NCBI RefSeq assembly: GCF_052425735.1
Contig: NC_135761.1
Span: 17,298,001 to 17,362,000, forward strand
DNA length: 64,000 nt
DNA from: Oculina patagonica
Lineage: Eukaryota
Reading direction: 5' to 3'
This document shows, piece after piece, positions 3,121 to 64,000 of this stretch. The notes under the pieces are model-generated. The model worked only from the letters and a program-made list of their open reading frames with translations. It had not been told where the DNA came from and ran no database searches. Position 1 is the stretch's first letter, and the number at the start of each line of letters is the position of its first letter. The position numbers and the translations under genes were made by a program.

Positions 3121-3169
3121 CTAAAAATAGAAAAAATACAGTCAGGAAACGAAGAAATAGCGATTCCAA

Positions 3170-3239
3170 TATTATCATCATCATTGCCATCATCATCATT
3201 ATCATCATTGTTATTTTTATTATTACGGTTATTATTGTT

Positions 3240-3279
<40 letters not shown>

Positions 3280-3280
3280 A
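3170..3280. repeat. (ATC)n/(ATT)n microsatellite
   Basis: Visible trinucleotide runs; these explain the poly-I/M/L ORF stretches. Confidence 0.85.
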
Positions 3281-3604
3281 TATCAAAGGTATTTCTATAA
3301 TGGCATGTTTATTTTGTGCAATGTGTAATATTTGTACGACCATTGGGGAAAAATTCGATTTCCGTTCCATGTCTGTCATCAAGAATTAACTAATTGATCA
3401 GAACTGAGTTCTGTTTACCGACTTAATCTACAATCCTCTATTTCCGCACAATAAACTACGTTCAAAGGCAAGCTATCAGACGCATGTAGGATATGCATAA
3501 GTAAGTATTCACTGGTGAGCTGAAAAGTTTTAATTAACTGCAAAGACATAACCTGCGTACAAAAACATGTACACGCAAAAAATGTACAGAGAGCGTACAA
3601 AACC

Positions 3605-20892: not shown

Positions 20893-23800
20893 GGGCCCAA
20901 AACAGTCGACCCCGACGTAGGTGAATGGGGGCTTGTCAGGAGTGATCCTGTCTTGCGGCAGGTTTGCCATCTTTTGCTCTCCAACTGGCGCTTGTCTCTT
21001 TCTGCAATTGAAGCAGCTGTTGAGGGACTTTCTCACTGCAGCTCTTGCCTTTATGATCCAAAATCTTTCTCTGATCATAGAGAGCACGTGTTCTGTGCCA
21101 GAGTGCCCGGAAGCGTGGTGGTAGAAGCTGATAATCAGACCAACAACGTGATGTGAAGTCGGCAGAATTATGGGATGTTTCGCGTCCGGTCGAAGGGGGG
21201 CGTTTTCAAGTCGTCCACCCACACGAAGCAGACCGTCCATCAACCGTGGGTCAAGCTTGGAGATTTTACTTGACTTCTTGACTTGAATCTTCTTTGTAGT
21301 AGCGGCGCATCCATTTATAACATCGGCCCTTGAATTCTTTAGGATGGCGATCTCTTCCTTGAAACTCTCTTTCTGTACATGGACCAGTATTTCCCTTTCG
21401 GCCTTGTCCAGTTCCTCCACGGTTATTGGTTCTATCCTTGTCACCTGGCTGCGGGGGATGAATCCTGATTTGCGTTGTGAAGCCGCCTTTCGCAGGTTTG
21501 CTCGGTAACGAAGAATCCACGCCACAAACTTCTTTAAACGGTACCACTGGGAAAAGCGTCCGAAGAGTTGGTTGAGTGTAATCTTCTCTGTTTCAGTTTT
21601 GGTAGAAAACACTTGAGATTCTCTCTTGACCTCTGGGTCGTTTTCAGCGACTGTAGAGGTTTTGAACTGCTGGTTTGGCCAGTCTTCCTCTGATTTCCAA
21701 AGGAAATCCGGTCCGGTTAACCAACGCTTGTTGTTCAGCAAGGCTTCGGCTGAGAGACCACGCGAGGCGTCGTCTGCCGGGTTTTCCTTTGTGCCGACGT
21801 GTCTCCACTGGTAAGGGGAGCTGACTTCTTGTATCGCAGCTATACGATTCGCGACGAAGGTATGAAACCGTTTGTCTTCATTTGCGATGTACCCCAAAAC
21901 ACAGGTGCTATCTGTCCAAAAGATGGACTGATCAACTGGAATGCCAATTTCCTTTCTGAGCATTTTATCCAATCGCGTGGCTACTACAGCTGCTGAGAGC
22001 TCCAGGCGTGGGATTGTCAACTGCTTTAGTGGGGATAGCCGCGATTTGCCAATGAGGAAGGAACAATGGACATCACCCTTAGTGTTGATGACGCGGAGAT
22101 AGGTGACAGCACCATATGCATGCTGGGAAGCATCTGCGAAATGGTGAAGCTGACTGGAAGCTACTTCTCCAAAGTCGGTTGGTTTGAAACAGCGGTCAAC
22201 CTTGAGGTTTTCGAGACTGGGAAGTTCATCAAGCCAGTTCCTCCAGCGAACGAGGTCCTCATCTGAAATAGGGTCGTCCCAGCCCAGGTTCTTGCGACAT
22301 AAGTCCTGCAGCAATGCCTTTGCCGGCAGGGTGAATGGAGCTGCAAACCCTAACGGGTCGTAGACAGAGCTGACCACAGACAAAATGCCTCGTCTTGTAG
22401 GGGGCCTGTCCTTCACGCTTATCTTGAAGCCAAAGGTGTCAGACTCCACATCCCACCTGACTCCCAGGGCTCGCTCGATTGGTAGTTGATCGAGGAGAAG
22501 ATCTGTCACGGATGCTGCCCTTTCCGATGTCGGGATAGAATCGATGACCTTCCGTGAATTGGAGATCCATTTTGTCAAGCGGAATCCTCCTTTAGAGAGC
22601 AGTTGACGGAGCTCGTCCACAAGCACGATGGCCTTGTTCTCAGATGAGACTGACTTGAGACAGTCGTCGACGTAGAAATTGTCTTTGACGCTGTTGACTG
22701 CCTCCTTGCTGAATGCTTGCTGATTATCCTCAGCAGTTCGCCTGAGACCAAAGTTAGCACAACTTGGTGATGATGTGGCGCCGAAGAGATGCACCATCAT
22801 CTGATACTCCTCTGGCTCACTGTTCAAATCATTGTTCGGCCACCAGAGAAATCGTAGGGCATCGCAATCGTCAGGACTGACGTGTACTTGGTGAAACATC
22901 GACTCTACATCGGCCATGAGAGCAACAGGTTCCTGCCGAAAGCGTGTCAGGACACCAACCAAGTTGTTAGTTAAGTCAGGTCCCTGAAGAAGTTGATCAT
23001 TCAGTGATGTTCCCTGGTGTTTCGCTGCACAATCAAACACCACGCGGACCTTGTCTGGTTTGTTCGGATTGAGGACAGGATGGTGAGGCAGATACCATAC
23101 TGCGCCGACAGGATGTGTCAGCCGGTCCTGGGGCACCTTGCGGGCGTGGCCGTTCTTCACCAGATCTTCCATGAACGAAGAATACTTTAAAAGGAGCTCT
23201 TGGTTTTTCAGCAGTCTTCTTCGTAACAACTTCAAGCGGTGCTCTGCCAACGGTCGGTTGTCCGGAAGGTTAGGTGGGACGTTTCTCCAAGGTAATGCTA
23301 TTTCGTAGTGACCCTCTTTGAGTTTGACGGACTGTTCCATAATACTCACTGCGCGCAAGTCTTCCTTTGACATTCCTGGGTCTTTATCGTAGACTGAGTC
23401 GCTGAATTCCAAGTTGCAGAACCTTGCAAACTGTTGACTGAGTTCGTTGTCGGCTCTGATGAAGTTCGCTGTGCGAGCTGAATTACCTTTCCGTTCTAAA
23501 GGACCGTTGATTGTCCACCCGAACATGGTTCTAACTGCATAAGGGCCTTGACCGTTGCACTCTCTTATTTCTTTAGGTTCTAGAGCTTTAGGAACGTCGT
23601 TGCCAATGAGCAAGCCAATGCAGGCGTCAATTTTTGGTAGCTCGATACCATTGAGGTGGGGGTACTTGCTCACATCCTCTTGCTGTGGGATGCTGTCTTT
23701 ACTAACCGGTAGTTTTGGGGTGGAGAAGACAGATGGAAGCTCAACAAAACTGTGCTCATCCAAGTCGAACACCTCCAACTTGAAGACACTGCATTCAGTA

Positions 23801-28012: not shown

Positions 28013-29076
28013 TGTATGCAGTAGGATCCGGAGAAGGATCCGGAGCAATTACCTCAGACGATGTAGAAGGATCCGGAGCAACTACCACAGTAGATGTAGA
28101 AGGAGCAACTACCACAGCAAATGCAGTAGGAGCAACTACCACAGCAGATGCAGTAGGAGCGACTACCACAGCAGATGTGGAGGATCCGGAGCAACGACAA
28201 CTGTAGATTCAATAGCAGAAATTACCACAGCAGATGCTGTAGGAGCGACTACCACAGCAGATGCTGTAGGAGCGACTACCACAGCAGATGTAGAAGGATC
28301 TGGAGCGACTACTACAGTAGATGTAGAAGGATCGGGAGCAACTACCACAGCAGATGCAGAAGGATCCGGAGCAACGACAACTGTAGATGCAGTAGGAGCA
28401 ACTACCACAGCAGATGCTGTAGGAGCGACTACCACAGCAGATGTAGAAGGATCTGGAGCAACTACCACAGTAGATGTAGAAGGATCGGGAGCAACTACCA
28501 CAGCAGATGTGGAAGGATCTGGAGCGACTACTACAGTAGATGTAGAAGGATCGGGAGCAACTACCACAGCAGATGCAGAAGGATCCGGAGCAACGACAAC
28601 TGTAGATGCAGTAGGAGCAACTACCACAGCAGATGCTGTAGGAGCGACTACCTCAGCAGATGTAGAAGGATCTGGAGCGACTACCACAGTAGATGTAGAA
28701 GGATCGGGAGCAACTACCACAGCAGATGCAGTTGGAGCGACTTCTACTGCAGATGTAGAAAGAGCAACTACCACTGAAGATGCTGTGGGAGTGACTACAA
28801 CAGCAGTTTCAGCGGAAGCAACTACCACAGCAGGCGCAGCGGGAGCAACTACTACTGCTGGGGGAAGAACAGTTGTTGCTGAGAGAACAATAATTACACC
28901 ATCAACCATCGCAGTTTCAGAAGGCTCAGCACAGAGCTCTTAAGCTACTTCTTCCTTGACAGAAAAGATAACCACAACCACAACACGTATTGAGAACGAA
29001 GACAGTTCAACAAAGGCTGATCCCTCTTCTACTAAAGTATCATCAACTACAAACACCATTATGCCTAACGGATTAG
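28013..29076 (+). CDS. Mucin/proteoglycan repeat exon of copy 2 (DVEGSGATTT / DAVGATTTA repeats), disrupted
   Basis: TTTTCCAG|TG TAT GCA ... GGA TTA G|GTAAG; 33-bp and 27-bp coding repeats; frameshift near 28181 and stop at 28941. Confidence 0.8.
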
Positions 29077-34132: not shown

Positions 34133-36163
34133 CAGGGACGTAGCTAGCCTATAGGCCCGTAGGTCCGGACCTACAAATTTGTTAGCCCACTCATATTTTC
34201 ATGTACAATGGAGAGCAATTCAGGCTGAAGCACTTTCAAGATGAAATAGAAAGCAATGTGCATTGTAAATATCGCAAATAAACTTTCACGATGGGTCAAG
34301 TCTCAAGCAAGTAGAAAGTCGGAAGACCTCTAGAGTAGCCAAGTGATAGGGTATGTGTCGTCAAAGACAAGTGCGTTTATATATTTGGCAATGAGTGAAA
34401 GTTGGCCCATTCTTTGTAGTAAAATATAAAAATTTAGCTAGTGCTGTGAAATTGCAATTTTGAGGGTCTTTATCGGTAGGATGCCCTCGAACACCCCCCC
34501 CCCCCCCTCCCCACCTGCCGNNNNNNNNNNNNNNNNNNNNNNNNNNNNNNNNNNNNNNNNNNNNNNNNNNNNNNNNNNNNNNNNNNNNNNNNNNNNNNNN
34601 NNNNNNNNNNNNNNNNNNNNNNNNNNNNNNNNNNNNNNNNNNNNNNNNNNNNNNNNNNNNNNNNNNNNNNNNNNNNNNNNNNNNNNNNNNNNNNNNNNNN
34701 NNNNNNNNNNNGTAAAAACATCAGTTACAAAGATTAAAACACACACAAAAAAACTGATTTACATGTTTGCCGTGTGGGAGCACGAGGGAGACATCAGGCA
34801 ATTGATAAATCTTTTAAATTGGCTAGGGGAACTAGCAGCTCTGACATCGTGGGGAAGACTATTCCACAACTTTGCCCCACTGTAACAGAAACTTCGTTTT
34901 AAAAAAACAGTACGGGGCTTAGGTAGAGCTAACTTGTTTTCCTTGTCTCTAAGGTTATATTCTGTGCTGAATGGTGTAAATAGGTCTTGTAAGTACTCCG
35001 GAGCTTGTTTATTGATAGTATTAAACATTAGTTTCGCTTTAAGCTTTTTCCTTCTGGTAAAGAGGGTATCCCATCCTAGCTTTGATCGTAAGGCGGTAGC
35101 ACTAGAAAAGAAATCCGACTTCGTAATGATTCTTAAGGCGCGATTTTGTAACTTTTGTAATTTATCAGCTAGTTCATTGCTTAGACCATCCCACACAGGA
35201 TAGCAATAGTCGAAATACGGTTCGATGAGAGCTCTATATAGCAAAATAGCTGTCTCTTCGCAAATGAATGGCCGTAGCCTTTTAAGAGCACCTATACCAG
35301 AGGAAACAACCCTGGCAATCTCATTGACATGTTTGGTCCATGACAAATGTTGGTCAATGTGGATTCCCAGCGATTTAGTGTGGCAGACTCTATTAATCTG
35401 TTGGCCTTCTATATGTATATTTGCTGAATGGTCGGCGGTATTTGCAAGCCTCTGACGCGAGCCAATAAACATAAGCTCGGTTTTAGCAATATTTAAACTT
35501 AATTTATTTACCGTCAGCCATTCGTGAAGGTTGACAAGTTCGTTATTTATTGAATGTTCTAGTTCGGGTAAGCTATTGGCGGCAATGCTATAATGCTGGT
35601 ATCATCAGCATACATCCAAGGGGAGGCTTTACTCAGACAATTCGGCAGATCGTTGATATATATCAAGAAAAGGAGAGGCCCAATTAAGCTTCCCTGTGGG
35701 ACGCCACAGGTAACAGGGCGCGCGCCAGATAGCTCACCATTAACTAGACACTTTTGTTGGCGGTCACTGAGATAAGAGTCAAACCACCTTAGGGACTTTT
35801 GATCAATTCCATAGCAAGCTAACTTTCGCAAAAGAATCTTGTGGTCTATTGTGTCAAAAGCCTTTTTTAAATCTATAAATACCACACCATTAATAAAACC
35901 GTTGTCTATATTAACAGACCAGCTGTTAGTGGCTTCAAGCAAGGATGTAAGGGTGCTATGCATTGATCTAAAGCCGGATTGACAGTTAGCTAGCAGATCG
36001 TTAACGTTAAGATACTCATAAAGTTGTTTGTACATTAATCTTTCAAAAATCTTAGCAACAGCAGGAATAATCGAAATCGGTCGGTAATTCTAGAAGCGGC
36101 CAAGAAGAAGCGGCCTAGAAGCGGCCAAGCCTACAACTCTTCAGAAAGCTGGCTACGCCCCTG
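34133..36163. mobile_element. hAT-like non-autonomous element with 5-bp TSD, hosting a LINE fragment and a gap
   Basis: CACAC|CAGGGACGTAGC ... GCTACGCCCCTG|CACAC; absent from the copy 1 intron. Confidence 0.7.
34712..36090 (-). mobile_element. 5'-truncated CR1/L2-group non-LTR retrotransposon (RT and C-terminus), frameshifted
   Basis: [33 protein letters not shown] (35559-36035), then ...LQKLQNRA...GAKLWNSLP...FKR (34759-35472). Confidence 0.92.
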
Positions 36164-49218: not shown

Positions 49219-49647
49219 TTAAGAACAGCAACCACTTTTCCACTGCTTAACCATTGGCTGCGGATTTTCTAGCTCCAAAGTGTTCGACGCTGGTGATTGT
49301 TCCTGATTGCCTTTTTGAACCAACATCTCTGCAATGGTGTTAAAAGTATCCTGAATGCCTTCTCCTGTCTTTGCGGATGTAAGAACACTGAGGCAGCACT
49401 CATTTGCAGTATTGAATAACTCAATGGTTTCAGTGGATATCTGACATTCAAGGTCCTTTTTGTTACCAACAAGTATTTTCAATGCATCTGGAGAAAATTC
49501 TTCCAGATCTCGAATCCAGTGTCCTAAATAGTGTATCGATGAAGGTTCATCCACACTATAAACAAAAATTGCGGCATGTGATCCACGATAGTAATTATTT
49601 GTTATTGTGCGAAATCTTTCCACTCCTGCTGTGTCCCATACACCAAG
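49219..49647 (-). CDS. Rab-like small GTPase A, exon 2
   Basis: TTTACAG|CTT; encodes LGVWDTAGVERFRTITNNYYRG...GNKKD...TSAKTG...SGCCS-stop. Confidence 0.92.
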   Translation of the reverse strand, partial: LGVWDTAGVERFRTITNNYYRGSHAAIFVYSVDEPSSIHYLGHWIRDLEEFSPDALKILVGNKKDLECQISTETIELFNTANECCLSVLTSAKTGEGIQDTFNTIAEMLVQKGNQEQSPASNTLELENPQPMVKQWKSGCCS

Positions 49648-49873
49648 CTGTAAACAAAAAATACCCAGATCAGATAGACTTCATTTCAAGAGAAATAAAA
49701 ATAAATAAGAAAAGGAAAAGAATGCACACAACATTAGTTGTTTACCATAGTGCACAAACCACACACCCTTTTTCAGACCAAAACGGTAAACATTTTTAAA
49801 TTATTTCGGGGGCAAAACGGCACAAAAACCAAAACCTTTGGTGCTGAACATACCATACCCACCCCCTGGGGGG

Positions 49874-50160
49874 TAAAGGTAAGGTTAAGCCTGCATACGA
49901 GCCAAGTGGCTCATCAGGTCAGAGCATATCCCGGTTTCCGTAGCATTAAGCAGCTAGGAGTATTTCTACTCCCCCCTGGATGGGATGCTAGTGCATCGCA
50001 GGGTTACCCTCCAGCAGTAAATTCACCGGCACCCATTTATACACCTGAGAGTAAATAAGTTTCTTGCCTAAGAACACAATGCAGTGTCCCAACCAGGTCT
50101 TGAAACCGGACCACTCGATTTGGAGTCTGGCACACTAACCATAAGGCCACCACACCTCCC
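49874..50160 (-). mobile_element. tRNA-derived SINE in the intron of Rab-like A
   Basis: Same family as 57078-57372, in reverse orientation; flanked by CTGGGGGG direct repeats. Confidence 0.75.
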
Positions 50161-50798
50161 CTGGGGGGACTTCCATACTATTTATGAAAGAGACAGGATT
50201 CTCATCAGAAAATTTGAATTAAACTGCTAACAGAGACCAATCTAGGTGTGCCTCAATCTTTTTCGATCCCTAAAAGACACCATTTTTCATGCCTGATTGG
50301 CATTTTATATTTTTTCACATACAGACCTCGACACCTAAAATCATTGCCTTTCTTTTCTCAACAAACTATACATGAGACCACATCTGTAATGTTCACCCCT
50401 TAGCGAGACGATGAGCACCCTGTCCCTTTCATATAATAAAGATCCTCCCATCCCCCCTCCCCAGGACCCACTTTATGTTATTAATCCCCTGGGATAAATA
50501 ACACAAAGGCCAGGCACCACTGCAGAAAACATCAGAAATAGAAGAAGTGATCAGATGACAGTCATCACAGCCCCTGAATTATATTAAGCTTACTCATATT
50601 CAACTGGTGGAAAATATAAAATTAACTGATAACTTGACAGTCATCTAAAAAATCCACAATTGCAGATCAAACAAACCAGAAGGATAACCGTTCCCTATTT
50701 TCGATAAAAAAAATGTCTTAAGCTTTATACTTAAAGTTTAATTTACCAAAAAGTATAATTTCTGAATAAGCTTTCAAGAGCTTAAATCTTTCACTTAC

Positions 50799-50981
50799 CG
50801 TCACTTGTTGGTCGCCAACCTTCACGTACAAAGAAAAGCTGTCAATTCCCACTGTGGTCTTCCTGCCGTCGTTAAATGAGTTTTCCTTTGCACGGTGAAA
50901 AATTGCTGTTTTTCCAACCCCGGCTTCGCCCAACAAGATAACTTTGAAAAGCGGACCCTTGTCTGCGCTTAGAGCCGCCAT
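50799..50981 (-). CDS. Rab-like small GTPase A, exon 1
   Basis: Encodes MAALSADKGPLFKVILLGEAGVGKT...TTVGIDSF...GDQQVT, then |GTAAGT; 183 bp, phase 0; spliced product 203 aa. Confidence 0.92.
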
Positions 50982-51300
50982 TGCTTTTTTACATGTCCCC
51001 ACAGGACACGGGCCTACAAGTTCATATCAGGGGGAGGGAGACGGGAAGTTGTTACAGGAGATAGATGCCTTTATTTCCAATCTACTATATTAGAAAAATA
51101 TAATTAAGTCATTCAAAGACGTAGATGAATTAAAATGGACTGTACCTTTTGTGAGAAATGAAATTTGTTTTCTTTTTCTTTCGATTTGTGTGCATTGTTT
51201 ATCCACCCCACCCCACCCTGCAGAGTATCCACGCGTTGTTGAGCCCGTGATTTCTGCGAAAAAGGAAAGGATTGTATTTCCTTCATTTCTGAGCAAAGAA

Positions 51301-51480
51301 ATGGCGAAAGAGGAGGGTGTTGAACTTATGTACAAAATCGTGCTCGCTGGAGATCTTGGTGTAGGCAAGACCTCGATATTTCAGAGGTATGACATCAACA
51401 AGTTTTTTGAGAACAAGGAGTCCACATTTGGCTTAGACAAATTAACGAAGGAGGTCGTAATAGATGGAAAGCGATGCAAG
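51301..51480 (+). CDS. Rab-like small GTPase B, exon 1
   Basis: Encodes MAKEEGVELMYKIVLAGDLGVGKT...STFGLD...IDGKRCK, then |GTTAGT; 180 bp, phase 0. Confidence 0.92.
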
Positions 51481-52698
51481 GTTAGTGGAATCTGTTCTTG
51501 TGAGTGAATGTGTAGACGACAAACTATTATTAAACGCTAACATACAGGTAGTGGCGGGGTTTTGATACAAATACTGTAAGTTTCTTAACAAGATGCATTC
51601 AACATTTCGCCCTTTGAAACATCAATAAAGGCCTCAAATATTTTTCAGCCAACCATAGAGCTATTTAAGCAGATTTAAGCTTAGGCTTAAATTATAAGTT
51701 TGTACACATTTTTCCTAAGCCATTAATGTCTTTCAGTATCAAGTTTTATGTAAGCTTACGTGTTTTGGAATAACTGTGTAAATACAAAAAACGTCATGCA
51801 ATATTAAAGATAATATTTGGGATAATGTAATTGGTTGAAGCATATCATGAAACAGAATATGGAACCATTTTGGGCATTTATTTTATAGAGTAAATAAGTA
51901 AAAAACAGCAACATAATTTCCATGTTTTCGCATACATGTATTTACACTGCACCTTTGGAAAACACATTCACTATGGAATTCAAAACTCGACAAATTGATG
52001 CATTTAAACTTATGTCGATCATCACCATGACAACAGCCAATAGTCTCTTGAATTGAGATCCACATACACCAATCGGCACAACTCATGCAAGTCGGCTGAA
52101 ATGACTGATGGCAGGGTGTAAAACAAGAAAGTCTTTGGTTAAAATTGAACTTCGAGGTTTGCATGTTTTTAAAAGGTGCATCAAAGGGCTGGGAATGAGA
52201 CATTTGGTTTAATTGCTAGTGTCTTTATCTATTTCATTGTCCCTAATGTCCATGCAGTATGTGTTGCCATAGTTTCTTAAGACGGATTCTGCTGAAAGTT
52301 CGAGCAATAAGTGCAAAAATTACGTACCAAAAGCCTACTCATAATACGGTAACATTTTATATACTATTTGAAACACCTTACTTAAATTCATTTGTGTCAG
52401 TGACCCCGGGATTAAACTCTAAAGCATTCTCGAGAAAATTCAAGTCAAACCTCGTAAAAAGGTGTAAACCGCGCCATTTTGTTTGAAACTGACGTGAAAC
52501 GTCCGTTTTAACTGAAATGTAGATAACTTCAAATCCATTTTCTCTCTAAAAAGTTGATTAATTGCCAGGCAACTGGAACAGTGTATTTCCCTGAGACTAG
52601 AAACCTTTATGCTAATGCTATTTTCTACTGGGTTCCCACCCCCTTACCCTTACCCTCCCAGCAACTCCAAAGCACCAAGGGTAGGCGCTCTGCTCTGC

Positions 52699-53116
52699 TA
52701 TACCTGCCAACTCTTTCTGGGTCAATGGCGTGAGATTTTTATCCTGTGATTGCCAGTATTTCCGAAGACAATAAAACCATGTCTGAAGTTTTCCGAAGAT
52801 GTGTGTTCAGAATTCTGAAGGCTGTGTGTGGACGTGTTTTGCTAAACATGACCGCGTTCCCAATGCCTTTCTTGTCAAAACTGAGATTTTGGGGGAAGTA
52901 TTGTCATTTACTCATTTTGCATGGAGTTTTCTTTTCTCGCATTTGTTTGAGTTTGCATTTTTTTGGAAAGTGTGTCGGTTATGGCTGTAATAACTCACAT
53001 ACATGTATTTCGACTAGGCATGAGAAATTGGTTGTAAGCTTGAGTTGGCGCGAGATCGAAGTTTTCAACTCGCAGGTGTGAGACTCACGCCTTAAGCATG
53101 AGAGTTGGCAGGTATA
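52699..53116. mobile_element. MITE with 6-bp TSD in the intron of Rab-like B
   Basis: CTCTGC|TATACCTGCCAACTCT ... AGAGTTGGCAGGTATA|CTCTGC. Confidence 0.8.
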
Positions 53117-53410
53117 CTCTGCAGAGGCCTCTTTTCTTTTTCGAATGGGCTGGGCAATCATCGATCCTTATCGCGCCATTGGACGCATAAGGCCTCAATA
53201 AGGCTGGGCAATAAGGAAAGATTAAAAGTATGTGCATGGAGCCTGGCCGGGGAGAGAGAAACAAAAGTGCACAGGGTTATGGAGCCTCTGCAGAGGAAAA
53301 AGCAAGGTAGGATATAGCTGACTGGAAGCAGACTGATTGGTGTGGTCATCGAAATAACTGACTTAAAGATGTTAATTGACGTTTAATTGCTATATTTTGA
53401 TCTTTACAAG

Positions 53411-53854
53411 ATTAATGTGTGGGACACAGCTGGAATGGAACGGACACGGTCCCTAACATCAAACTATTACCGCAGTTCTCAAGCAGTTATCCTTGTGTAT
53501 GCTATAGATGACATGTACTCTCTGACTGTACTGCGAAGCTGGATAGAAGACATAACCAAGGATGCCACAAGTGCTCTGAAATTTCTTGTTGGGAACAAAA
53601 TAGATCTTTCAGATGAAGGGTCTCAAGTTGATGATCAGCTAGCAGAGTCGTTTTGCAAGAACAACAGAATAGAAAAACTGTATAGAGTGTCAGCCAAGAC
53701 TGGTGCTGGAGTTAAAGAGATGTTTGATGACGTTGTAAAGATCTTGATAACTAAGAAGAAGGAGTCCACCATACGGGATAAAAATGCTTTTTCACTCTAT
53801 GAAAATGGCAATGAAAATGAAGCTGCAAAAAGCAAAAGTAATTGCGGTTGTTGA
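53411..53854 (+). CDS. Rab-like small GTPase B, exon 2
   Basis: TTTACAAG|ATT; encodes INVWDTAGMERTRSLTSNYYRS...GNKID...VSAKTG...SNCGC-stop; spliced product 207 aa. Confidence 0.92.
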   Translation: MNVWDTAGMERTRSLTSNYYRSSQAVILVYAIDDMYSLTVLRSWIEDITKDATSALKFLVGNKIDLSDEGSQVDDQLAESFCKNNRIEKLYRVSAKTGAGVKEMFDDVVKILITKKKESTIRDKNAFSLYENGNENEAAKSKSNCGC

Positions 53855-54578
53855 TAGGATTACAAAAATTATACATTTACATTATTTTAATTATTATTTA
53901 ATAGGTAAATGTGGTATTCTCACACTGAAGTGCAAAATAATAGAAAGCATAAATTTTAAAGTATAGTGCATCCCTTTAATTACTGTGGTAACCTTACAAA
54001 GTGATTTAGGGATGAAGGCAAATGCTGACAGAAATTGCAAAGAAAAGGTACTGTGCCTAATGAAGATAACATAACAATAACAACACAAACACAACATAAT
54101 GATAACATAACACAAACTTCTTTTAAAAATTATTTTTTTTTTTTTTTTTTTTATACAAAAAAAAAAAAACTGGCATAATGTATAGGACTGTGTGGAAATC
54201 TTACCTCCGAATTTTTTATATCAGAGTGAATATGATTTATAATTACATTTTTTACATAAAAAATAGCAGATACAATATTTATCTCTAAGCAAAATCAATG
54301 GCTATTACTGAGCCAGGCTAGTGACAGAATTACATGTAATCAGCTTTGCAAAAAGATGATCAATGAAAATTATTTTTATTCCACACTGTGTTTGCCTTGT
54401 GTTAAATGATCCGTTTCATTAATAATTACTGACCCTCCAAAATCCTATTGTTTTCTCTTTGCAATATCTCAATGATTGCAGCCAGCCATGTACCAAAACA
54501 TCTAAGTATGTGAAAGCAACTAAAATTGTCAAATGCAGCAACCCTTCAAATTGAGAGCATTTTGGAGCTGGTTACTAG

Positions 54579-54745
54579 CAGTGGTGGATCCAGACCTTCA
54601 GCTAAGGGGGGGGGGGGGGTCTGCTTGACTATGAATATTCAATTCTGCGAAGAAAATTCCGGCACTTCAAAGAAAATGCGCTATTTCCGAAAAAATAAGG
54701 GGGGGGGAGCGGGCCCCGCAGCACTTCAAAGTGGATCCGCCACTG
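54579..54745. mobile_element. hAT-like MITE
   Basis: CAGTGGTGGATCCA ... TGGATCCGCCACTG; flanks ACTAG / ACTAA. Confidence 0.7.
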
Positions 54746-54963
54746 ACTAAATTGGAACGTAAGTTGCCAGTCTCGTGACTAAAATTGAGAAGAAGGATTG
54801 AAAACGCGATCTTATTATTTAGCGACTAAAGTTTTTTACTGGCGACCAAAAATTAATGGCCACTAAGGAAAAAAATAAACTTGGAGTGGCATTGTGCAGA
54901 GAGATCAATAATTACTTTGGTTCACATCAGCCTCAATCAGCTGTCTGCATTATAACCAATAAT

Positions 54964-55194
54964 GAGGCCCTGCCAGGGGGATCCCGTGTTGCTGGTCTAA
55001 ACTTAAAAATGTCCTGTGTCGCTGTTTTATCGGACTTCCTGTCGCTGTCAGTAGTTGAATTGAAGGAAAACTGCTTGTCCTTGTTGGAATTTAAGTTTTT
55101 CCATTAGGGTTGTCGTTTGTCGCGATTTTAATTTATGTGCTGTCACTACTTTTTGGGCCATGTCGCCTGTCGGAATTTACCCTGGCAGGGCCTC
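54964..55194. mobile_element. MITE with 6-bp TSD
   Basis: AATAAT|GAGGCCCTGCCAGGG ... CCCTGGCAGGGCCTC|AATAAT. Confidence 0.85.
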
Positions 55195-57077
55195 AATAAT
55201 GCTGTGAACCTCAGTGAATTCACTGCTGTTTGGTAAAGAAATTGTTTTGTTTTGTTTTTTGTTTTTTAAGTTTTTTAGGTGGGGGGGGGGGGGGGAAAGA
55301 GGTACATTCGCATAATTTTTGTGACTACTGCGCATGCGCCAGTAGTCACTATTGCTGTCATGTCCGTCCCGAAAGTAAGTAAGTAACAATAGAGTATACT
55401 TCGGAGCCAATCAGCACAAAGAAATACAGATATGTGAGTCTCTTCGGTAACACTTCGTAACAACGATGGCCTACCGATGGTCTACGATGACAAACGAACA
55501 TCTTTGTAGTGATCGATTACATGTTCGATTGCGAGGTCTGTGTTTTATATTTTACAACATTCACCTCTCACAGCTTTCGTATTTTGTTTCTAACCGAACA
55601 GATGAAAGGTTTCGTGAGAATTTTTCAGCTTTTAGGTCGGTATAGAAAGTATACGACAAATTTCTCGACTTCGCTTCGCTCTCAGCTTTGGAACGGATTG
55701 TTCGATCGCGAGTTAAGTGTTTTTATATTTTACAACATCACACAGCGTTCACATTTGCTTCCAACCGATCGGATAAAAGGTTTGGTGAGTACATTTACGC
55801 CTTTAGCTCGACCAGTTATTAGTGTGCGACGAATATGTATTGTATTTTAACCTGATTTGACCACGCGTGATTAACAACACGTGCGCTTGCCGATACTCCA
55901 ACTCCATAATTGTAAAGTACATTAGCCTCGTGTGAAGAAATTGAACCCCTCTTTAGGAGAATTCAGCCACTGCGGATGAATATTTCGCGCTTAAGTTTTA
56001 GGGAAATACATGATCCTCTCTCCCACTATGGTAATAATATAATATTGTGTCCGTTTACGTAGCAAACAAATCTGAGCAAGTGCCTGCTATTGACCTCTAC
56101 GGTCGAATTAAATCTTCTAGTGATCGAGAAACTATCGATGTGAAAGCTGTGGTGAATCATTACTCCAGAACTGTGATTTGTTAGATGTATTAAAACATAA
56201 TGATCGTAAACCGTAGTAGTTCGATCAAATAAGCGATAAACTACAGTGTTCATCATTCAAGCCCTCGCAGCCTAAAGTTCAAGTCACGCAATCGCTTTAA
56301 TACAAGTACTTTTACATATATACAACTCCACAGTACGCTTTTATTTGAGATTTTAGTCTTAATATCCGCTTTTTAATTGTAATTCTAATTGTAATATTTT
56401 ACTAATATTGCAACCTTTATTTACTAAATTCAGCAATAATTATTTCTTTATTGCAAATCATTCAAGTTAAGTATTTACAGGTAATTAAACAACTTCCAGG
56501 CATAGAAGATGAATGAAAGTTTCCGGTTAATACAAACACAGTTTTTCTCCTGTGTATACAATTAAAAAAAGTTTTTTGATTGCCAATTACAAGGAAATGA
56601 ACAAACAAATAACCTGCAGAGCAGTGTGCCTCTCACCAAGAAAGTGTGAAGTTTTTACCGATTACAGTAAAAAGAAAAACCCATTTGTATATAAGTTAAA
56701 AAGTTCAACGCGGACACCTTTTCGAACACCAATAATATCTTGATGGGTACAGTTGTAGATACTATGATATGTAGCTGAACACTATCCACTTGACTTCTCA
56801 AGATCAGAAAATGAGAAATTCAAACCTATTGTGCTTCTATTAAAGGCAAACCAAAAGCAAATATGAATTGTTCTGCAATGCTTTGAATAATTATGTTCTG
56901 TTCTTGTTACCTATAGATATACAAAATAACGATGTAGCAACTTCTGTTAAATAGATCTCACTAAGTTGTTGTATCATTCTTGTTTGATATTAAAGTTTAT
57001 TAAATTAATTGAAACTGTTTTTGATTATCCAATAATTTTTGGGTTGTATTTTGGAGCCGATTTTTGGTTACTTTTGT

Positions 57078-57372
57078 GGGAGGCGCAGTGGCCTAATGGT
57101 TAGTGTGCTGAACTACTGATCAAAATGCAAGCAGTCGGGGTTCGAGCTCTGGTGCGGCGTTTTGTTCTTGGGCAGGAAACGTAACTCTCATGGTGTCTCA
57201 CTTCACCCAGGTGTTTAATGAAATGGAAACTGGAAAATTGACTGCTAGGGGGTAACCCTGCAATAGACTTGCATTCCATCCAGGGGGAATAGAAACACTT
57301 CTAGTTAAATGCTAAGGAAACCGGGATAAGCTTCAGCCTGATGGGCTACTTAGCTCATATGCAGACTCTTCC
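57078..57372 (+). mobile_element. tRNA-derived SINE
   Basis: A-box TGGCCTAATGG, B-box GGTTCGAGCTC; body shared with 49874-50160. Confidence 0.75.
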
Positions 57373-57982
57373 TATTATCTTCTTGATTACCACTGATTTA
57401 TACACCATATAACACTCTGACCGACAGTTTGACAATAAATATAGCCGCATATATATGCCAATTCTACTTTCGTAATTTTCATCGTCTTAGCAGTAGTCAC
57501 ACGCGCCTGTAGGCGCCTATTTTTCTATTTTGCTTTACCGTTTGAGACATTTTTATTGTTATCAAACAGATTTGCATTATTCATTATATAACTCCCATCT
57601 AGCAAATAGAGTATGATTATTTTAATTAACCCAAAGCATATTTTTATGGGACGCTTTGCACCTCTAATAATTTATGGACTGTATTATTTTGAAGGCTCTA
57701 GCAACTTTTGCCTTGCCTATAATTTTACTGACTAAAATGGAGCTGACGTTCCATTATCATTGAACAAAATAGCTCAATTCACGCATAGCATGTAAACTGG
57801 CATCTCCCTAAAGCCCCAATAGGGTGAAAAAAAAATGAGAGAGTAGAGTGAGACGAAAGAAAATCAGACAGAGATCTTCCTACCCAGACCATGCTTGGGT
57901 AACTTCTCTGACTGTTGTTGTTGTTGTTTTTAATTTTGCTATACCCCACTATGGAGCCAGCCCTGGCAGGCTAAATCCATGT

Positions 57983-58203
57983 AATAGACCAATTCGGCTA
58001 ACATGTTTACATCGTTGTTGCCCCCCACGACAGATCATGTCATGATTCCTTTGGGAGGTTACAATTGTTCTGTTCGTTCATACTCCCATGCGCTCAGTTA
58101 CGTGTGACAAATATTGCACAATTGTAACCTCCCAAAGGAATCATCACATTGTCTGATTTGGGTGGCAACAACGATGTAAACATGTTAGCTGAATTTGTCT
58201 ATT
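57983..58203. mobile_element. Palindromic MITE
   Basis: AATAGACCAATTCGGCTAACATGTTTACATCGTTGTTGCC and its near-perfect reverse complement. Confidence 0.75.
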
Positions 58204-58993
58204 ATCATTTTGAAATTTATTTATTTTTATCCCTTCAAATTAACTTATAGATAAAGCATAATTTAAATAGATTTAGCCAAGCTTAAAAGCGAAGCTCCCC
58301 GGTTATTTACTTCACCCTTTTCGAAAATCCGAATTTACTGACCGATAACAGAAAAAATAGAGCACTTGAGCCTGGGGTCCAATGTAAACCATTACTTGGT
58401 CAGCGGTAAACTTCGAAAAAACATTCGACCTCGATGAGTTCTATATGTGAGCCCACGATATGGTCATGTGATACTGGTCAGCAGATACCTTGTTTTGACA
58501 GCTGTCAATTGACCATGACATGGATGTCCAATATCAAAGATGTAAGCTGATATTAACCATAACCTTAAACCTATTTCTAGAGTATGTCTGCCATGTTGGG
58601 GCAACATCGTCGTTGCTAGGGCACACGTGCCCACGAACCATACCACTAGCCATGATGACCAAGAAAAACCAAAAGCATGGGTCGATTAATTTTCTATGGG
58701 TATGGGGCTCTGCTCTGCGGCCCTTTGGGCCACTGGGAGCTCCGCTATTAATATATATTTTTTTCGGTAAAACTTAAGCCTTTATTACACATGTGTACCT
58801 GTTAACAACAGATACCGGTAATAAAATTTTGTTATTTTTAAAAAGATATTCCTACATGCAAACATATTTTATTGGCATTTTAAGCAGTCTGATTGGTCAA
58901 TCTTAGGATATTCAATACTATCTAACAGTAGATACTTGGTATCATGTCGAGATTGATGGGTTAATAATAAATTATTGTAAATTGTTTGTCATG

Positions 58994-59485
58994 TTAGTGA
59001 AAGCAGCATCTCTTTCTCCTTCGAGGGCTATTTGCATCATCTTCTATTTGCAAGGTAATAATCTCATTAGGACCATTACAATTGTACCGAGCAGTTTCCT
59101 CAGTTGAACATGCGGTGCGACCTACATGTGTAGTTTTCATGGGTGTGGCTTTCTTTATCAAATGGGAGGCCACTGATTGTAGCATTTCTTGAATTCCTTC
59201 ATTAGTTACAGCAGAAGTCTTAAACTGAAGTGTAAAGGCATTGGGTGGAATTGATGCCATTGCGTCATCTTCACTGACAGTTGCATCTAAGTCAATCTTA
59301 TTTCTAATAAGAATGCAGCAAGCTCCTTGTGCATTGATTTTGACAAAGTTTAACAGTTCAATGGCTTGGCTGAAAGAATCCCTATCAGTTGCACTGTATA
59401 CAAACAGAACAACTTGGCTAAGTACAAAGTGAGAGCGAGTTAACTGTGCATGCCTTTCAAGTCCACAGGTGTCGCACAGAATAAG
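58994..59485 (-). CDS. Divergent Rab-like small GTPase C, exon 2
   Basis: TTTGCAG|CTT; encodes LILCDTCGLERHAQLTRSHF...RNKID...KTSAVT...RRRKRCCFH-stop. Confidence 0.88.
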   Translation of the reverse strand, partial: LILCDTCGLERHAQLTRSHFVLSQVVLFVYSATDRDSFSQAIELLNFVKINAQGACCILIRNKIDLDATVSEDDAMASIPPNAFTLQFKTSAVTNEGIQEMLQSVASHLIKKATPMKTTHVGRTACSTEETARYNCNGPNEIITLQIEDDANSPRRRKRCCFH

Positions 59486-59619
59486 CTGCAAATCAAAACA
59501 ATGAAACTCGTTTAATCAGTTACTTGGTAGGTACTTGCAGATTGAGAGTGCATGGTGACACACAGGGTAGTAGAGGGGAACAGGGGGCGGGAGCCGGGGA
59601 GAAAAGGGGTGGGAAGCAG

Positions 59620-59918
59620 GATTCTTAAGGTGGCGGGAACCAGGAGAAAATGAGCGAAATTTCGTAACATTTCATTATATTTTGCAATAGACATATGCAT
59701 GGAACAAACAGCTGGAGAGAACAGCTACGGAAAGGGGCAGGAGGCGGGAGTAAAAGGTACGGGAGGTGGATTCTTAAGGTGGTGGGAACCAGGAGAAAAT
59801 GAGTGAAATTTCGTAACATTTCATTATATTTTGCAATAGACATATGCATGGAACAAACAGCTGGAGAGAACAGCTACGGAAAGGGGCGGGAGGCGGGAGT
59901 AAAAGGTACGGGAGGTGG
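59620..59918. repeat. Two-copy ~149-bp tandem duplication inside an intronic repeat
   Basis: GATTCTTAAGGTGG.GGGAACCAGGAG ... GGTACGGGAGGTGG, twice. Confidence 0.8.
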
Positions 59919-60275
59919 GAGGTTCAGACCCCCACTGTCCCCCCCATAGGGTAATTACCCTTCTTTTAGTAACAGACTGTTGGTTTTTCATTTATTAAAA
60001 TCAGGTTGCGTGTCTGCTTACCCAACTTAGCTAGGACTATTTGTCTGCTTCCTACACCGTACCTATCACATTACACTTATATGCTGACATACCTTGCCCA
60101 GAGCTATACACATAGGAGTGTTTCTCCAATCTGCTGATGTCCCTATGTCACACAAGCCCAACCGCACACAAGCCCCACCCCTCTCCCTCCCACGACTGTG
60201 CTGGTGCCATAACATAAAAACTTTCACTACTCCCTATTCTCTCTATCTAGTATAATTACGAAAATATACCAATTA

Positions 60276-60642
60276 GGGCCTCTTTGCATGAGAGTTTTTG
60301 TCCCGGGATGACTTTCGTCCCGGGATGAATTCATCTCGGTGTCTGATCATTTTCTTGTTGCTGTTTACATGATGATACATGATTTCGTCCCGGGATGAGT
60401 TCATTCCGGTACGATTTCATCCTGGGATGAAACACCGGGATGAAATGTCATCCTGGGATTAAACGTGATGAAAAACCCCATGTAAACAGCCCTTCCCGGG
60501 ATGAAATGTAATGTTATGTAAGCACAGGCTAGATGAATTCAACTCGGGCGGGACGACTTATCCCGGGATGAACACGCTCATGTAAAATAAATTTTTTTCA
60601 TCCCAGGACGAAACTCATCTCGGCTCTCATGTAAAGAGGCCC
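60276..60642. mobile_element. PIF/Harbinger-type MITE with TTA TSD
   Basis: TTA|GGGCCTCTTTGCATGAGAG ... CTCTCATGTAAAGAGGCCC|TTA; internal CCCGGGATGA repeats. Confidence 0.88.
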
Positions 60643-60673
60643 TTAGTAGGAAAATGTTACCAATTCATCATAC

Positions 60674-60844
60674 CTCAACTGTTGTACCATCTACTTCCAC
60701 TGTTACTTTACGCTCATGATCCTTTAAAGTTTTGCTTGGACGTGACTTACTGTCCTGCAGTGGTAATCCACACACGCGACGGAAAATGGACGTCTTTCCC
60801 ACACCAGTCTTTCCACATAATACAACCTTGTATGTATTGACCAT
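60674..60844 (-). CDS. Divergent Rab-like small GTPase C, first coding exon
   Basis: Encodes MVNTYKVVLCGKTGVGKTSIFRR...VEVDGTTVE, then |GTATGA; 171 bp, phase 0; spliced product 220 aa. Confidence 0.88.
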
Positions 60845-61119
60845 TACAGGGCCCGGAGTCAATCTTATTTTAGTCACCAATACGCTTAATACAATGTGGT
60901 GCAATGCTAATACAACGTTCTTTGCACCATTTCATGAGATGTACAGCAATGTACTGGTATCATCTGATGCACAGAAATCCTCACTTCTGGAAGACATAAT
61001 TATACAAATAAAATTGATTACGAAACTGATCTCAGTTCTCAACTACTAGCACTGTACTAAATTCCCTGAAGTCAAACCATGGTCAAAACAGCCATCTGCA
61101 TTAATTTTGGTCCATTAGG

Positions 61120-61755
61120 CAGGGTCTAAAGGAGGGTGGCTATATTAGGCTATAGCCCATCATGAGGCCTAATTTTTTTCACCATGGAGCCTGATCGAAT
61201 CCCCAGGGGGGGGGGGGTACTCAAAAAAGTTTTATATGGGGAGGCTCCGCTCCAAGTTCTAACCCCTTACCCTTTTATATACCATTTTTGACAGAAATTG
61301 TACCCCTTTTGTATATCTTTAACTGAAAAAAGGCACCCCTTTCATATACCTAAGAGACATGGCGTGGACTTAAAATAGGACGTTTTCTTGTCGACATTTT
61401 TATGTAGCGCTTAATAAATTAAAATAATACAACCATAAATTGTGTCTGTTCGAAATATTTTAATTAAAGGCCCTTTTAAATAGCCAAATGACAGATTTCC
61501 ATACCCTTTCATATACTTAAACTCGTGAAATCCCTACCCTTTTATATACCTGAAGGCTGAAAAAGGTACCCATTTCGGGCGGAGCCTCCCCGTATAGGCC
61601 ATTATAGGGAGTACCCCCCCCCCCCCCCCCCCGGGATCGAATCATGAAGCCCCATCATTTTGCCCAAAACATTTGCTACAGAGCTTTTTGCAAGCCCTGG
61701 GAGCTGACTTTTTTGGGTCCAGAGCCCTGGAGCCCTAAACTTCTCTGGGACCCTG
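61120..61755. mobile_element. hAT-like MITE with 6-bp TSD and a nested MITE
   Basis: ATTAGG|CAGGGTC ... GACCCTG|ATTAGG. Confidence 0.65.
61201..61635 (+). mobile_element. CCCC...GGG MITE (full copy of the family at 679-893)
   Basis: CCCCAGGGG...GGTACTC ... GAGTACCCC...CCGGG; flanked by the ATCGAAT direct repeat. Confidence 0.8.
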
Positions 61756-63077
61756 ATTAGGGAAAGGGGAAGGCATAGCAATTTTTCTTTTCACTTAGGA
61801 ATCCTGCCAATCAACAAAAAAGACATTTATTAACTAAACACTTACATTATGATGACACTGTCATGAAGACATTTACATGAAGATCAATTGTGTGTGCTAA
61901 CCTAGCCTCCTACGCAGATGTCCTTTGGACTCATCATGCGGAGGAACGTGTGATGAGCCCAAAGCAAGTCTGCGTTGGAGGCTAATGAGAAGAGGGGGAG
62001 ACATGGGGGTTTGCGATGTTGTAGTATTGCTAATTTATATGGCAGTGTTCAGTGCAGTGAATAAAATCCCATCTAGCCTGTGTTGCAGACGAACTAAACC
62101 CTGGCAGGCTTAATCCCATCTTGCAGCGAATCTCAAACCATACGGTGTGCGATGTTTGTGTTTTTGAGCCTACAGTGTTCGGCGAAACAAAATTGCACAA
62201 GAAAATATGATGAAACACCGTCACCGCAATATAGTCAAGTTACTTATCAATGAAAACGGATTGGGATTGGCAGCTTAAACGTATTTTGTTACACAACATG
62301 GAACGTATTTTAAACAATTTTATAAGCACTGTTAATGAAGATATTAGAGCTAAATTTCCATAACACCGCTAACAATTGCGGTGTTTTATGTGGTGTTGCG
62401 GTGTTGAGGGTCCCCCAATTGTGGGGAGGAGTGAAATACGATCGCCCCTAAAAACGACTGCGTGGGAAGCTAATCCTAACCCAGATAAATATGATGTCAA
62501 ATGCCTGCCCAGGGGGGAGTGGGTACTGTCGTGCTGAGACAAGTTTAATTTTGTTCTAGCTATAAATTTTTCAACAAGTCTAACAATTTGACGAAATATA
62601 GCTGTGTGCATTAAAATATTGTCAAAGGCATTCAGAACTTTTCAACATTTCGTTATATTGCACACTTCAAGCGGCGTAAAGCTGCGAAAACAAAATTTTG
62701 TCTCTTCGGGAATGCCCCTCAAGTATGCCCCTAGCTAGGATCGATTTTTACCAGCCGTGTCGGACCAGTAGAATCGGTTAATTTTACGTGAAACTACAAT
62801 ATCACTTCATTGTGTTCACTAACCCTACAAATAACTCACCAAAACATCAATCAATTGTAGAATTTCCGAGGCAAAATGATCCGCAAAATCTTGTGTGGAA
62901 CACACAAGCTTAGTAGCCTGGCCGTTTACCTAATCGACAGTGGACTGGAAGCTAGAAATTACATGTTGTTAGTTTTGCAACATGGCGGACCGGCGGACTG
63001 TGGAACTGCCTTTCTTTAATATTTATCTGTCAGTTTCATTATTGATTTGACCTTGCTCTTTAAAACAAGAGTAGAGT

Positions 63078-63260
63078 ATGGGGGATAAAGACTGCAAGAA
63101 ACTACCAGTGTACAAAGTTGCTCTGTGTGGGAAAACTGAAGTTGGAAAAACGTCCATATTTCGCCGCCTTCGAGGTGATGGCTTCAAAGACGATACATCA
63201 AAGTTCGATAATTTGGCAGAAGACAAGATCAAAGTCCGAGTTCAAGATAAAACCATTAAA
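63078..63260 (+). CDS. Divergent Rab-like small GTPase D, exon 1 (rest outside the window)
   Basis: Encodes MGDKDCKKLPVYKVALCGKTEVGKTSIFRRL...VQDKTIK, then |GTGAGG; 183 bp, phase 0; most similar to gene C exon 1. Confidence 0.85.
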
Positions 63261-64000
63261 GTGAGGAATGAGCTGAGTAATAAATAAATGATATGCAATC
63301 ACGTACTGGAGGCCAGTTAAAGATAACGCCACCTCACTCCCATAAGCCTTGAGAACAAATGGACAATGTCCATTTCTACATGTAAGCTTAGTTCAGGTTT
63401 TGTTGTTGTTGTAGCAGCTTCATCTATCAGAGCATTGCAGTGCGTGGCTTTATCTTAAATTGATCGAAGCAATGTAGACAAGTAGTTTTTTTTTTTTGTG
63501 TATTATCTGCACAGTTGCTGCATGATGACCTCAAGGGGTTTATTTTCAAAGTAAGCTTCAGATAAACATTAACTACATACCGGTAATTAATATAGTAGTC
63601 AATAACTTAAATTGATACCCCCCCTCCCCTTCTTAGGATGTGGCTCTTGGCTGGTCAGTGTTGTCATTTATCACTCATTGATAATATTCTCCATTCATTT
63701 GGTATATTTACCTCTAAGGGGCAAAATAAGCTAGAGACACACCCTCAAAAGTGGATTTCGGTTTCTTTTTGTGATGTTTCTCAAAATTTCTCATGGGTAT
63801 TTTCAGCTCTATTATATGGGAGCTTCTTGATCCCCCATAAATGGTAGGGGTGTAACAATACATCAAACTATCAATGCATCGTGATTGGGGGTGTTCCGAT
63901 AGCAATGCATCTTTCACAAATTCAATTTTCGATAGCAATCGCGATAGTCTCGTTAACTATCAATAGTTACGATAGTTTTTCAAATGGTGTCCTGTAGTAC

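Follow-up and report, generated by a model that had tools for sequence, protein, structure and literature searches.

Introduction

The switch II glutamine equivalent to Gln61 of Ras is typical of the Ras superfamily but does not define it, and among the Rabs this site is occupied by Arg in Rab20 and by Ser in Rab24. Natural Rabs without the glutamine are usually viewed as isolated oddities. Rab25 belongs to the same kind, reading DTAGLERY (supplementary alignment, PMC3425129), and the closest described system to the locus reported here is RabX6, a Rab1 derivative of metazoans which vertebrates have lost (PMC3425129). In the supplementary alignment of that study, RabX6 reads DTGGME in Drosophila, Anopheles, Apis, Daphnia and Lottia, the Saccoglossus protein has Ala at the Gln site, and adjoining sequences of Hydra and Amphimedon have Leu or Met. 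The fly RabX6 is a single gene enriched in neurons and glia, its product localises like Rab1 and Rab6, and the null mutant is viable with a mild phenotype and stimulus-dependent synaptic defects (PMC3402473, PMC8016483); literature searches on Bombyx RabX6 and on active RabX6 mutants gave nothing useful. Here we analyse a stretch of 64,000 nucleotides from the coral Oculina patagonica (NCBI RefSeq assembly GCF_052425735.1, contig NC_135761.1, positions 17,298,001 to 17,362,000 of the forward strand; hereafter the window), which carries four Rab-like genes, named A to D, all of them without the switch II glutamine. We read this locus, with a probability of roughly 65%, as a tandem cluster of RabX6-group Rabs, that is, of a metazoan Rab1-like offshoot with an ancient loss of the switch II glutamine, and the locus ties RabX6 to probable cnidarian counterparts.

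Compared with the RabX6 proteins of Drosophila (CG12015) and Bombyx (PDB entry 9vlb), gene B has the same Met for Gln, and it groups with RabX6 in the tree described below; the RabX6 tail, too, is CXC or CC. Gene B differs in having DTAG instead of DTGG and ERTRS instead of ER(V/I)AS; moreover, the fly gene is single, whereas Oculina B is part of a four-gene cluster and stands head-to-head with its paralogue A, which belongs to a separate clade. Rab25 (Leu), Rab20 (Arg) and Rab24 (Ser) resemble A–D in combining intact nucleotide-binding motifs with an absent switch II Gln, but they nest in the Rab11 and Rab24 groups and lost the residue independently, and no relationship of A–D to them appeared in our trees or match lists. 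The nearest Gln-bearing relatives, according to the PDB sequence ranking and the Swiss-Prot fold ranking, are Rab1, Rab35 and Rab18 (supergroup I), whose RabF motifs are recognisable in A; however, all of these keep DTAGQE, and a well-supported branch separates them from A–D. The Met at the Gln site can be read from earlier published RabX6 sequences. New are the cnidarian gene that is most likely the RabX6 counterpart, a pan-metazoan Val-bearing sister family, a coral-specific C/D pair and a conserved divergent pairing of the genes.

Gene models and conserved motifs

The four two-exon genes of the Ras/Rab family follow each other in the order A(-) B(+) C(-) D(+) from position 49219 to the end of the window (Table 1; assembly GCA_052425735.1, contig CM126638.1), and no further Ras-like sequence was found in the window. 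The source is O. patagonica, and the gene C product is 100% identical to an O. patagonica protein. A two-exon solver gave products of 203 (A), 207 (B), 220 (C) and 215 (D) amino acids, which in all four cases agree exactly with the lengths of the gene products annotated on the NCBI contig. Every coding intron has GT..AG ends and phase 0, its position being exactly four codons ahead of the Asp in DTxG. The first-pass annotation, made from the letters of the window alone, had described just this arrangement of four genes in head-to-head pairs with a phase-0 intron four codons before DTxG, and the gene models confirm it. The second exon of D, which had escaped that annotation, lies 1158 nt past the exon 1 donor and thus beyond the window; it was read from a 21.8-kb locus around gene C (L001). 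The Pfam Ras domain exceeds its cut-off on all second exons (1e-12 to 3e-25) and on the first exons of A and B. In view of the second-exon scores, chance open reading frames (ORFs) were rejected as an explanation of A–D; a retrocopy origin was rejected because introns are present, and a bacterial or symbiont origin because spliced metazoan orthologues exist.

Switch II reads DTAGVE in A, DTAGME in B, DTCGLE in C and DTSGME in D, which places Val, Met, Leu and Met, respectively, at the Gln position after DxxG. The absence of Gln noticed earlier for A–C is therefore upheld, and the retrieved exon adds D to the series. All four proteins keep the P-loop GxxxxGK[ST], the switch I Thr, DxxG, NKxD and SA(K/V), and their C-terminal tails GCCS (A), CGC (B), CCFH (C) and GGCC (D) are double-Cys prenylation motifs of the Rab type, which are kept within the families. 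The paralogues are mutually 28–38% identical, and the earlier remarks on intact motifs, double-Cys tails, open frames and high paralogue divergence were likewise correct. The non-Gln residue also persists in the orthologues: Val is present in 36 of 36 A sequences where the motif is visible, Met in all 18 coral B sequences, and the C-type relatives have Leu in 23 cases and Met in 4. In addition, the P-loops of family B and of RabX6 have a bulky Leu, Val, Ile or Tyr at the position of Ras Gly12, and the D protein of Oculina, and of Oculina only, has Glu at the fourth P-loop position (the second P-loop glycine).

The top matches in PDB and Swiss-Prot were all Rabs or Ypt proteins, as opposed to Ras, Rho, Ran or Arf. 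Five RabF motifs characterise the Rabs, namely IGVDF, KLQIW, RFRSIT, YYRGA and LVYDIT (PMC3192815). As judged by eye on the alignment, A matches them well (VGIDSF, LGVW, RFRTIT, YYRGS, FVYSVD) and B partially (FGLDKL, INVW, RTRSLT, YYRSS, LVYAID), and C and D match the last three motifs only, and loosely. A full-text literature search for the strings DTAGVE, DTAGME and WDTAGVERF returned no relevant match.

Relationship to RabX6 and phylogeny of the group

GDP-bound Bombyx mori RabX6 (9vlb), with WDTGGMER in switch II, ranks first in the PDB for gene C by both fold and sequence and for Stylophora B by sequence. An exhaustive profile search also recovered P0292, which scores 241 bits against 9vlb with an estimated identity of ~68%, and which is, to judge from its sequence, a clear RabX6 orthologue. 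In the maximum-likelihood (ML) tree of 74 sequences, B, anemone B, the B-type gene of the jellyfish Sanderia and P0292 cluster at 97/92. The Met site is shared by B, D and bilaterian RabX6 (WDTAGMER in B, WDTSGMER in D), the anemone B having Leu; the coral B orthologues all read DTAGME, and the B type ranges over corals, the anemones Actinia and Exaiptasia (Leu) and Sanderia (Met). Gene B is therefore most likely the cnidarian counterpart of RabX6, and the earlier statement that no named Rab subfamily could be assigned does not hold for it. Since the published RabX6 sequences and 9vlb already carry Met, the missing Gln appears to be an inherited trait of the known RabX6 group and not a peculiarity of this locus.

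The identity of gene A to its orthologues is 79–82% for Pocillopora, 71% for Montipora and 48% for Actinia. The A-type string WDTAGVERF is found in the sponge Sycon, stony corals, Actinia, the flatworm Macrostomum, the annelid Owenia, gastropods, scallops, Solemya, the brittle star Amphiura and the hemichordates Saccoglossus and Ptychodera; at the Gln site the scorpion (Centruroides) member has Thr and that of Biomphalaria has Ile. The position of the A intron is shared by the A orthologues of Actinia, Saccoglossus, Amphiura and Owenia, and the intron is absent from an insect Rab18-like gene, the one outgroup gene checked. Family A shows extreme conservation of switch I, of switch II and of the Rab-family motifs from sponge to hemichordate. 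The automatic names of the relatives conflict with each other (Rab-1B-like, Rab-35-like, Rab-18-B, Rab-43-like, Rab-2A-like, Rab-13, YPT1-like and ypt2), the one A-type sequence found in the 2012 survey of Kloepper and colleagues, from Amphimedon, is labelled Rab14_2, and the ESM Atlas neighbours of an A orthologue are an undiscriminating mixture of Rab clusters. These contradictory names, taken with the wide range in animals, indicate that family A is a real and old family across animals which has no name of its own and in which the Val appears nearly invariant. An old family had been proposed for the locus, and this is borne out by DTAGVE of the A type from sponges to hemichordates and by the B type in anemones and a jellyfish. 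Studies of Rab evolution thus gain a missing subfamily to name, one that is scattered under half a dozen wrong Rab names.

Some further sequences touch family A. P0281 from the coelacanth Latimeria chalumnae reads DTVGEE and sits in the A clade next to the scorpion member; it may represent family A surviving in one vertebrate lineage, or contamination. P0252, present in MetaClust only, is Gln-bearing and also lies inside the A clade. In Amphiura filiformis, an unannotated Ras-like gene (L006:19883-23647, plus strand) is located ~5.5 kb downstream of A on the same strand; it encodes LGLWDTGGFE, with Phe at the Gln site, has the shared intron position and shows a duplication of its third exon. 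An attempt to assign this DTGGFE gene to RabX6 or A reached no assignment.

Genes C and D are sisters in the ML tree (100/99) and share with RabX6 the P-loop context LCG..GVGK. Database relatives of C were found among corals only, and the D orthologue is known from Pocillopora only, through synteny. Both proteins are 59–60% identical to their Pocillopora counterparts, compared with 82% for A, and they appear to be fast-evolving sister duplicates that are so far known from stony corals only. RNKID is invariant in 33 of 33 C sequences, and the CC tails are retained. At 59474-59485, Oculina C encodes LILCDTCG, as against L(N/Q)LWDTLG in other corals and LWDT(L/A/V)G in all other sequences of the C family; the near-invariant Trp before DxxG is replaced by Cys in this species alone, and because this Trp is lost, Oculina C is regarded as derived within its own family.

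The trees were sampled from the best-scoring representatives of a search of 1.84 billion proteins with an A+B profile, and fused multi-domain gene models, which crowded the top ranks of the representative search, were excluded. The families A, B, C and D are each monophyletic. In the ML tree of 74 sequences, A–D lie across a 98/98 branch from all 30 Gln-bearing Rabs; altogether, three trees separate the four families from the sampled Gln-bearing Rabs with a branch support of 96–100%, two of which contain 30–56 Gln-bearing Rabs and give 96–98%. Family A forms its own clade of 23–24 sequences from eight phyla (92/90), apart from B plus RabX6. In these sampled trees, A–D thus cluster together and do not fall into different Gln-bearing Rab subfamilies, in agreement with what the first-pass annotation had supposed. 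A separate observation concerns the caddisfly Arctopsyche grandis, in which a protein named 'Rab-18-like' (P0137, locus L008) reads DTAGME, but groups with true Rab18 and has different intron positions; it appears to be an independent loss of the catalytic Gln.

Gene order and divergent pairing

The start codons of A and B face each other at a distance of 319 bp, and the leader exon of C at 62840 or beyond brings the transcript starts of C and D to within ~130 bp, so both pairs are tightly head-to-head. In Pocillopora, the order is B(-)A(+)C(-)D(+) with an A-B spacing of ~320 bp; in Actinia, A and a B-type gene lie head-to-head with a spacing of 674 bp; and the order in a third coral assembly is C(+)B(-)A(+). 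The idea that the four-gene layout persists in other cnidarians is thus true in part: both pairs are kept in Pocillopora and the A-B pair in Actinia, but the A-B unit of Pocillopora is inverted relative to Oculina, and in the third coral no D was seen within 9 kb of C. Bilaterian A genes, namely those of Saccoglossus, Amphiura and Owenia, lack a head-to-head partner of the Ras family within 10 kb. The aligned A-B spacers contain short, weak conserved blocks only. The short spacer of each divergent pair probably acts as a bidirectional promoter, and as the shared spacers are short, co-transcription of each pair is likely. Local duplication of DNA would have enlarged the cluster, with all copies retaining the same phase-0 intron; local expansion, as put forward earlier, was right. 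A–D share the intron position and are adjacent in three coral genomes.

Transcription, selection and structure model

Logan contigs, which were taken as RNA-type on a guess about the nature of the runs, were compared with positions 58500-64000 of the window. In run X2, one contig links 59485 with 60674, the ends being CT..AC, equal to GT..AG on the minus strand, as expected for the coding intron of C, and the same contig joins 60986 to 62840 across the intron in the 5' untranslated region (UTR) of C. Moreover, contig pieces in runs X1 and X17 stop exactly at both exon edges of the coding intron of C. For gene D, one mismatch-free RNA contig spans 63000-63197, covering the 5' end and exon 1, and the depth over the following intron is zero; intron and intergenic bins have zero depth as well. 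In other corals, full-length intron-less coding sequences of relatives of A, B and C are found on short transcript-like contigs. Between Oculina and Pocillopora verrucosa, dN/dS (Nei-Gojobori) is 0.11 for A, 0.15 for B, 0.38 for C and 0.25 for D, figures which are rough since dS, at 0.86–1.47, is near saturation, and by these values the orthologues do not evolve neutrally. In the AlphaFold model of C, the G domain is confident and the tail disordered, with a mean predicted local distance difference test score of 83. As a set, A–D are intact and spliced genes which are transcribed and evolve under purifying selection, and their products retain all nucleotide-binding motifs and the Rab-type CC/CXC tails. 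Apart from the genes themselves, high-copy transcribed repeats are present at 61260-61627 (the 5' UTR intron of C) and 60156-60707 (the coding intron of C); in these repeats the word depth of the RNA-run contigs ranges from hundreds to more than 10,000 with many loose ends, and reaches thousands at 61260-61627.

Limits of the proposed RabX6-group reading

Several points weigh against our reading of the locus as a cluster of RabX6-group Rabs, besides the guessed RNA nature of the runs, the near saturation of dS and the absence of D within 9 kb of C in the third coral. For the Gln-bearing side of the trees, the top scorers with the A+B profile were used and not a curated panel of all subfamilies, for which reason the monophyly of the non-Gln group is provisional; most of this sample comes from protists and metagenomes and carries no names, apart from a few that are Rab1- or Rab43-like. 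RabX6 is represented in the trees by one sequence, P0292. Gene B is 37% identical to RabX6 and 36% to A, which makes the orthology mainly a tree-based one. In the free tree, C plus D is placed beside P0270 of Sycon (92/84); forcing C plus D onto B plus RabX6 costs 1.8 log-likelihood units and is not rejected by the approximately unbiased test (p = 0.435). Furthermore, long-branch attraction could draw C and D into the non-Gln group. A wider proposal, which we regard as doubtful, is that RabX6, A and C/D make up a single unrecognised clade which lost its Gln at about the origin of animals and was itself later lost in most vertebrates; in cnidarians, A and RabX6 would have been co-dosed from one bidirectional promoter for more than half a billion years, the reason being a joint action as long-lived GTP-bound membrane markers, and the module would have been duplicated in corals.

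Proposed mechanism and alternative explanations

The proteins A–D are predicted to bind GTP, to be geranylgeranylated and to have a very low intrinsic GTPase activity, and they would stay GTP-bound until a GTPase-activating protein (GAP) of the TBC type acts on them with its own Gln, or until they are extracted or degraded. Slow intrinsic hydrolysis would be expected because the nucleotide-binding elements are intact and the water-positioning Gln is changed to Val, Met or Leu, and in the B/RabX6 branch also because of the bulky residue equivalent to Gly12. TBC GAPs provide both an Arg and a Gln in trans. Because both switch regions of A are extremely conserved, a cycle closed by such a dual-finger TBC GAP is favoured over a permanently locked switch. 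The dual-finger TBC GAPs have been contrasted with LepB, for which the Rab's own Gln is catalytic (PMC3674391). A precedent for hydrolysis without a cis-Gln is offered by Rap1, which has Thr in place of Gln61 and still cycles, with RapGAP supplying the catalytic residue in trans (PMC2265111); the likeness is one of mechanism only, as Rap1 belongs to the Ras family and not to the Rabs and the GAP has a different fold. Considered together, A–D offer a natural series of Val, Met and Leu at one site, from which it could be learned how Rabs switch off without their own Gln.

Another explanation is that A–D are GTP-locked, non-cycling Rab-like proteins, the activity of which is set by paired transcription from a shared promoter and not by guanine nucleotide exchange factors and GAPs. 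The retention of Gln in no family, the bulky Gly12-site residues of B and RabX6, and a divergent pairing that persists across Hexacorallia in spite of an inversion would all suit such proteins. However, the conservation of switch I, switch II and the Rab motifs in A fits partners that read the nucleotide state, and TBC GAPs can make up for the missing Gln. Moreover, the bilaterian A stands alone without a head-to-head partner within 10 kb (the neighbour in Amphiura being in tandem on the same strand), which means that the pairing is not needed for the function of A. We therefore consider a locked switch unlikely. Much less probable still is that only A and B are functional, with C and D being decaying or neutrally drifting duplicates. 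C and D do evolve fastest, the IGVDF-type Rab motif is gone from both, Oculina C lacks the conserved Trp and Oculina D has Glu for a P-loop glycine, and D is missing beside C in one coral; against this, every coral seen has open frames, the dN/dS values of C and D are well under 1, RNKID and the CC tails are retained in the C family, C is spliced and transcribed and exon 1 of D is found in RNA contigs, and C gives a confident fold model. Least credible of all is that A–D are unrelated members of ordinary Rab subfamilies (e.g. Rab1, Rab18, Rab35 or Rab14) which lost Gln independently and became neighbours by chance, since the scattered automatic names, which speak for it together with the mixed ESM Atlas neighbours, are what best-hit annotation gives to an unnamed family, and since all four stand apart from the sampled Gln-bearing Rabs in three trees, have one intron position in common that is absent from the single Rab18-like gene checked, and are adjacent in three coral genomes.

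The first-pass annotation had also mentioned, as speculation, a link of the four genes to symbiosome or phagosome trafficking, which has found no support. Relatives of A and B are widespread in non-symbiotic animals, and the biology of the fly RabX6, which is enriched in neurons and glia and located like Rab1 and Rab6, gives no hint of a role in symbiosis; the locus by itself says nothing on coral symbiosis.

Feature coordinates and other elements

Table 1. Positions of the exons, introns and spacer of genes A–D, numbered from the first letter of the window unless a locus is named.
Feature	Position	Strand	Evidence or remarks
Gene A exon 2, stop included	49219..49647	-	ORF and AG acceptor; LGVWDTAGVE to GCCS tail; Pfam Ras 5e-24
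Gene A intron, 1151 nt, GT..AG, phase 0	49648..50798	-	
Gene A exon 1 with start codon, P-loop GEAGVGKT, switch I	50799..50981	-	Pfam Ras 9e-9
A-B intergenic region, 319 bp, start codon to divergent start codon; candidate bidirectional promoter (putative)	50982..51300		
Gene B exon 1, P-loop GDLGVGKT	51301..51480	+	Pfam Ras 6e-10
Gene B intron, 1930 nt, GT..AG, phase 0	51481..53410	+	
Gene B exon 2, stop included	53411..53854	+	INVWDTAGME to CGC tail; Pfam Ras 3e-25
Gene C exon 2, stop included	58994..59485	-	LILCDTCGLE to CCFH tail; Pfam Ras 1e-12; ends of RNA contigs at 59485/59487
Gene C coding intron, 1188 nt	59486..60673	-	Spliced contig, run X2
Gene C start-codon exon	60674..60986	-	Coding 60674-60844, P-loop GKTGVGKT; 5' UTR up to 60986
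Gene C 5' UTR intron, 1853 nt	60987..62839	-	Joint 60986/62840, CT..AC ends, run X2
Gene C 5' leader exon, minimum extent	62840..62869	-	30 nt of spliced contig past the joint
Gene D exon 1, P-loop GKTEVGKT	63078..63260	+	Donor GT at 63261; exon 2 outside the window
Gene D exon 2	L001:5962-6426	L001 minus	Same assembly contig; IDLWDTSGME at start, GGCC at end

Past D, the next gene (L001:1-1385, outside the window) codes for an NDUFS3-like protein of the Complex1_30kDa type, a subunit of respiratory complex I. The remainder of the window holds several mobile elements. At 4045-7933 on the plus strand lies the coding region of a retrotransposon of the Ty3/Gypsy type with long terminal repeats, which consists of a 388-amino-acid ORF with weak matches of the gag-aspartyl-protease type below the Pfam cut-offs and an overlapping 936-amino-acid ORF with reverse transcriptase (RT), RNase H and integrase domains. 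A BEL/Pao-type retrotransposon occupies 20013-26331 on the minus strand, with a 1871-amino-acid ORF for Pao peptidase A17, RT and integrase zinc-binding domains and a 323-amino-acid ORF with DUF5641, and its GC content is ~50%, compared with ~38% elsewhere. An RT fragment of two ORFs at 34762-36035 on the minus strand (RVT_1 at 1.5e-23 on a piece of 158 amino acids) adjoins the run of N at 34521-34711, and is a candidate for the non-LTR, long interspersed nuclear element (LINE) type. A long tandem repeat is located at 28163-28909, both strands of which are open, the minus-strand ORF being rich in Thr, Ser, Ala, Val and Pro (with units such as VVVAPDPSTS). Finally, an ORF at 2846-3382 on the minus strand has a DOMON domain (3e-12) after a low-complexity stretch rich in Ile and Met, and probably represents a single exon from a larger gene.

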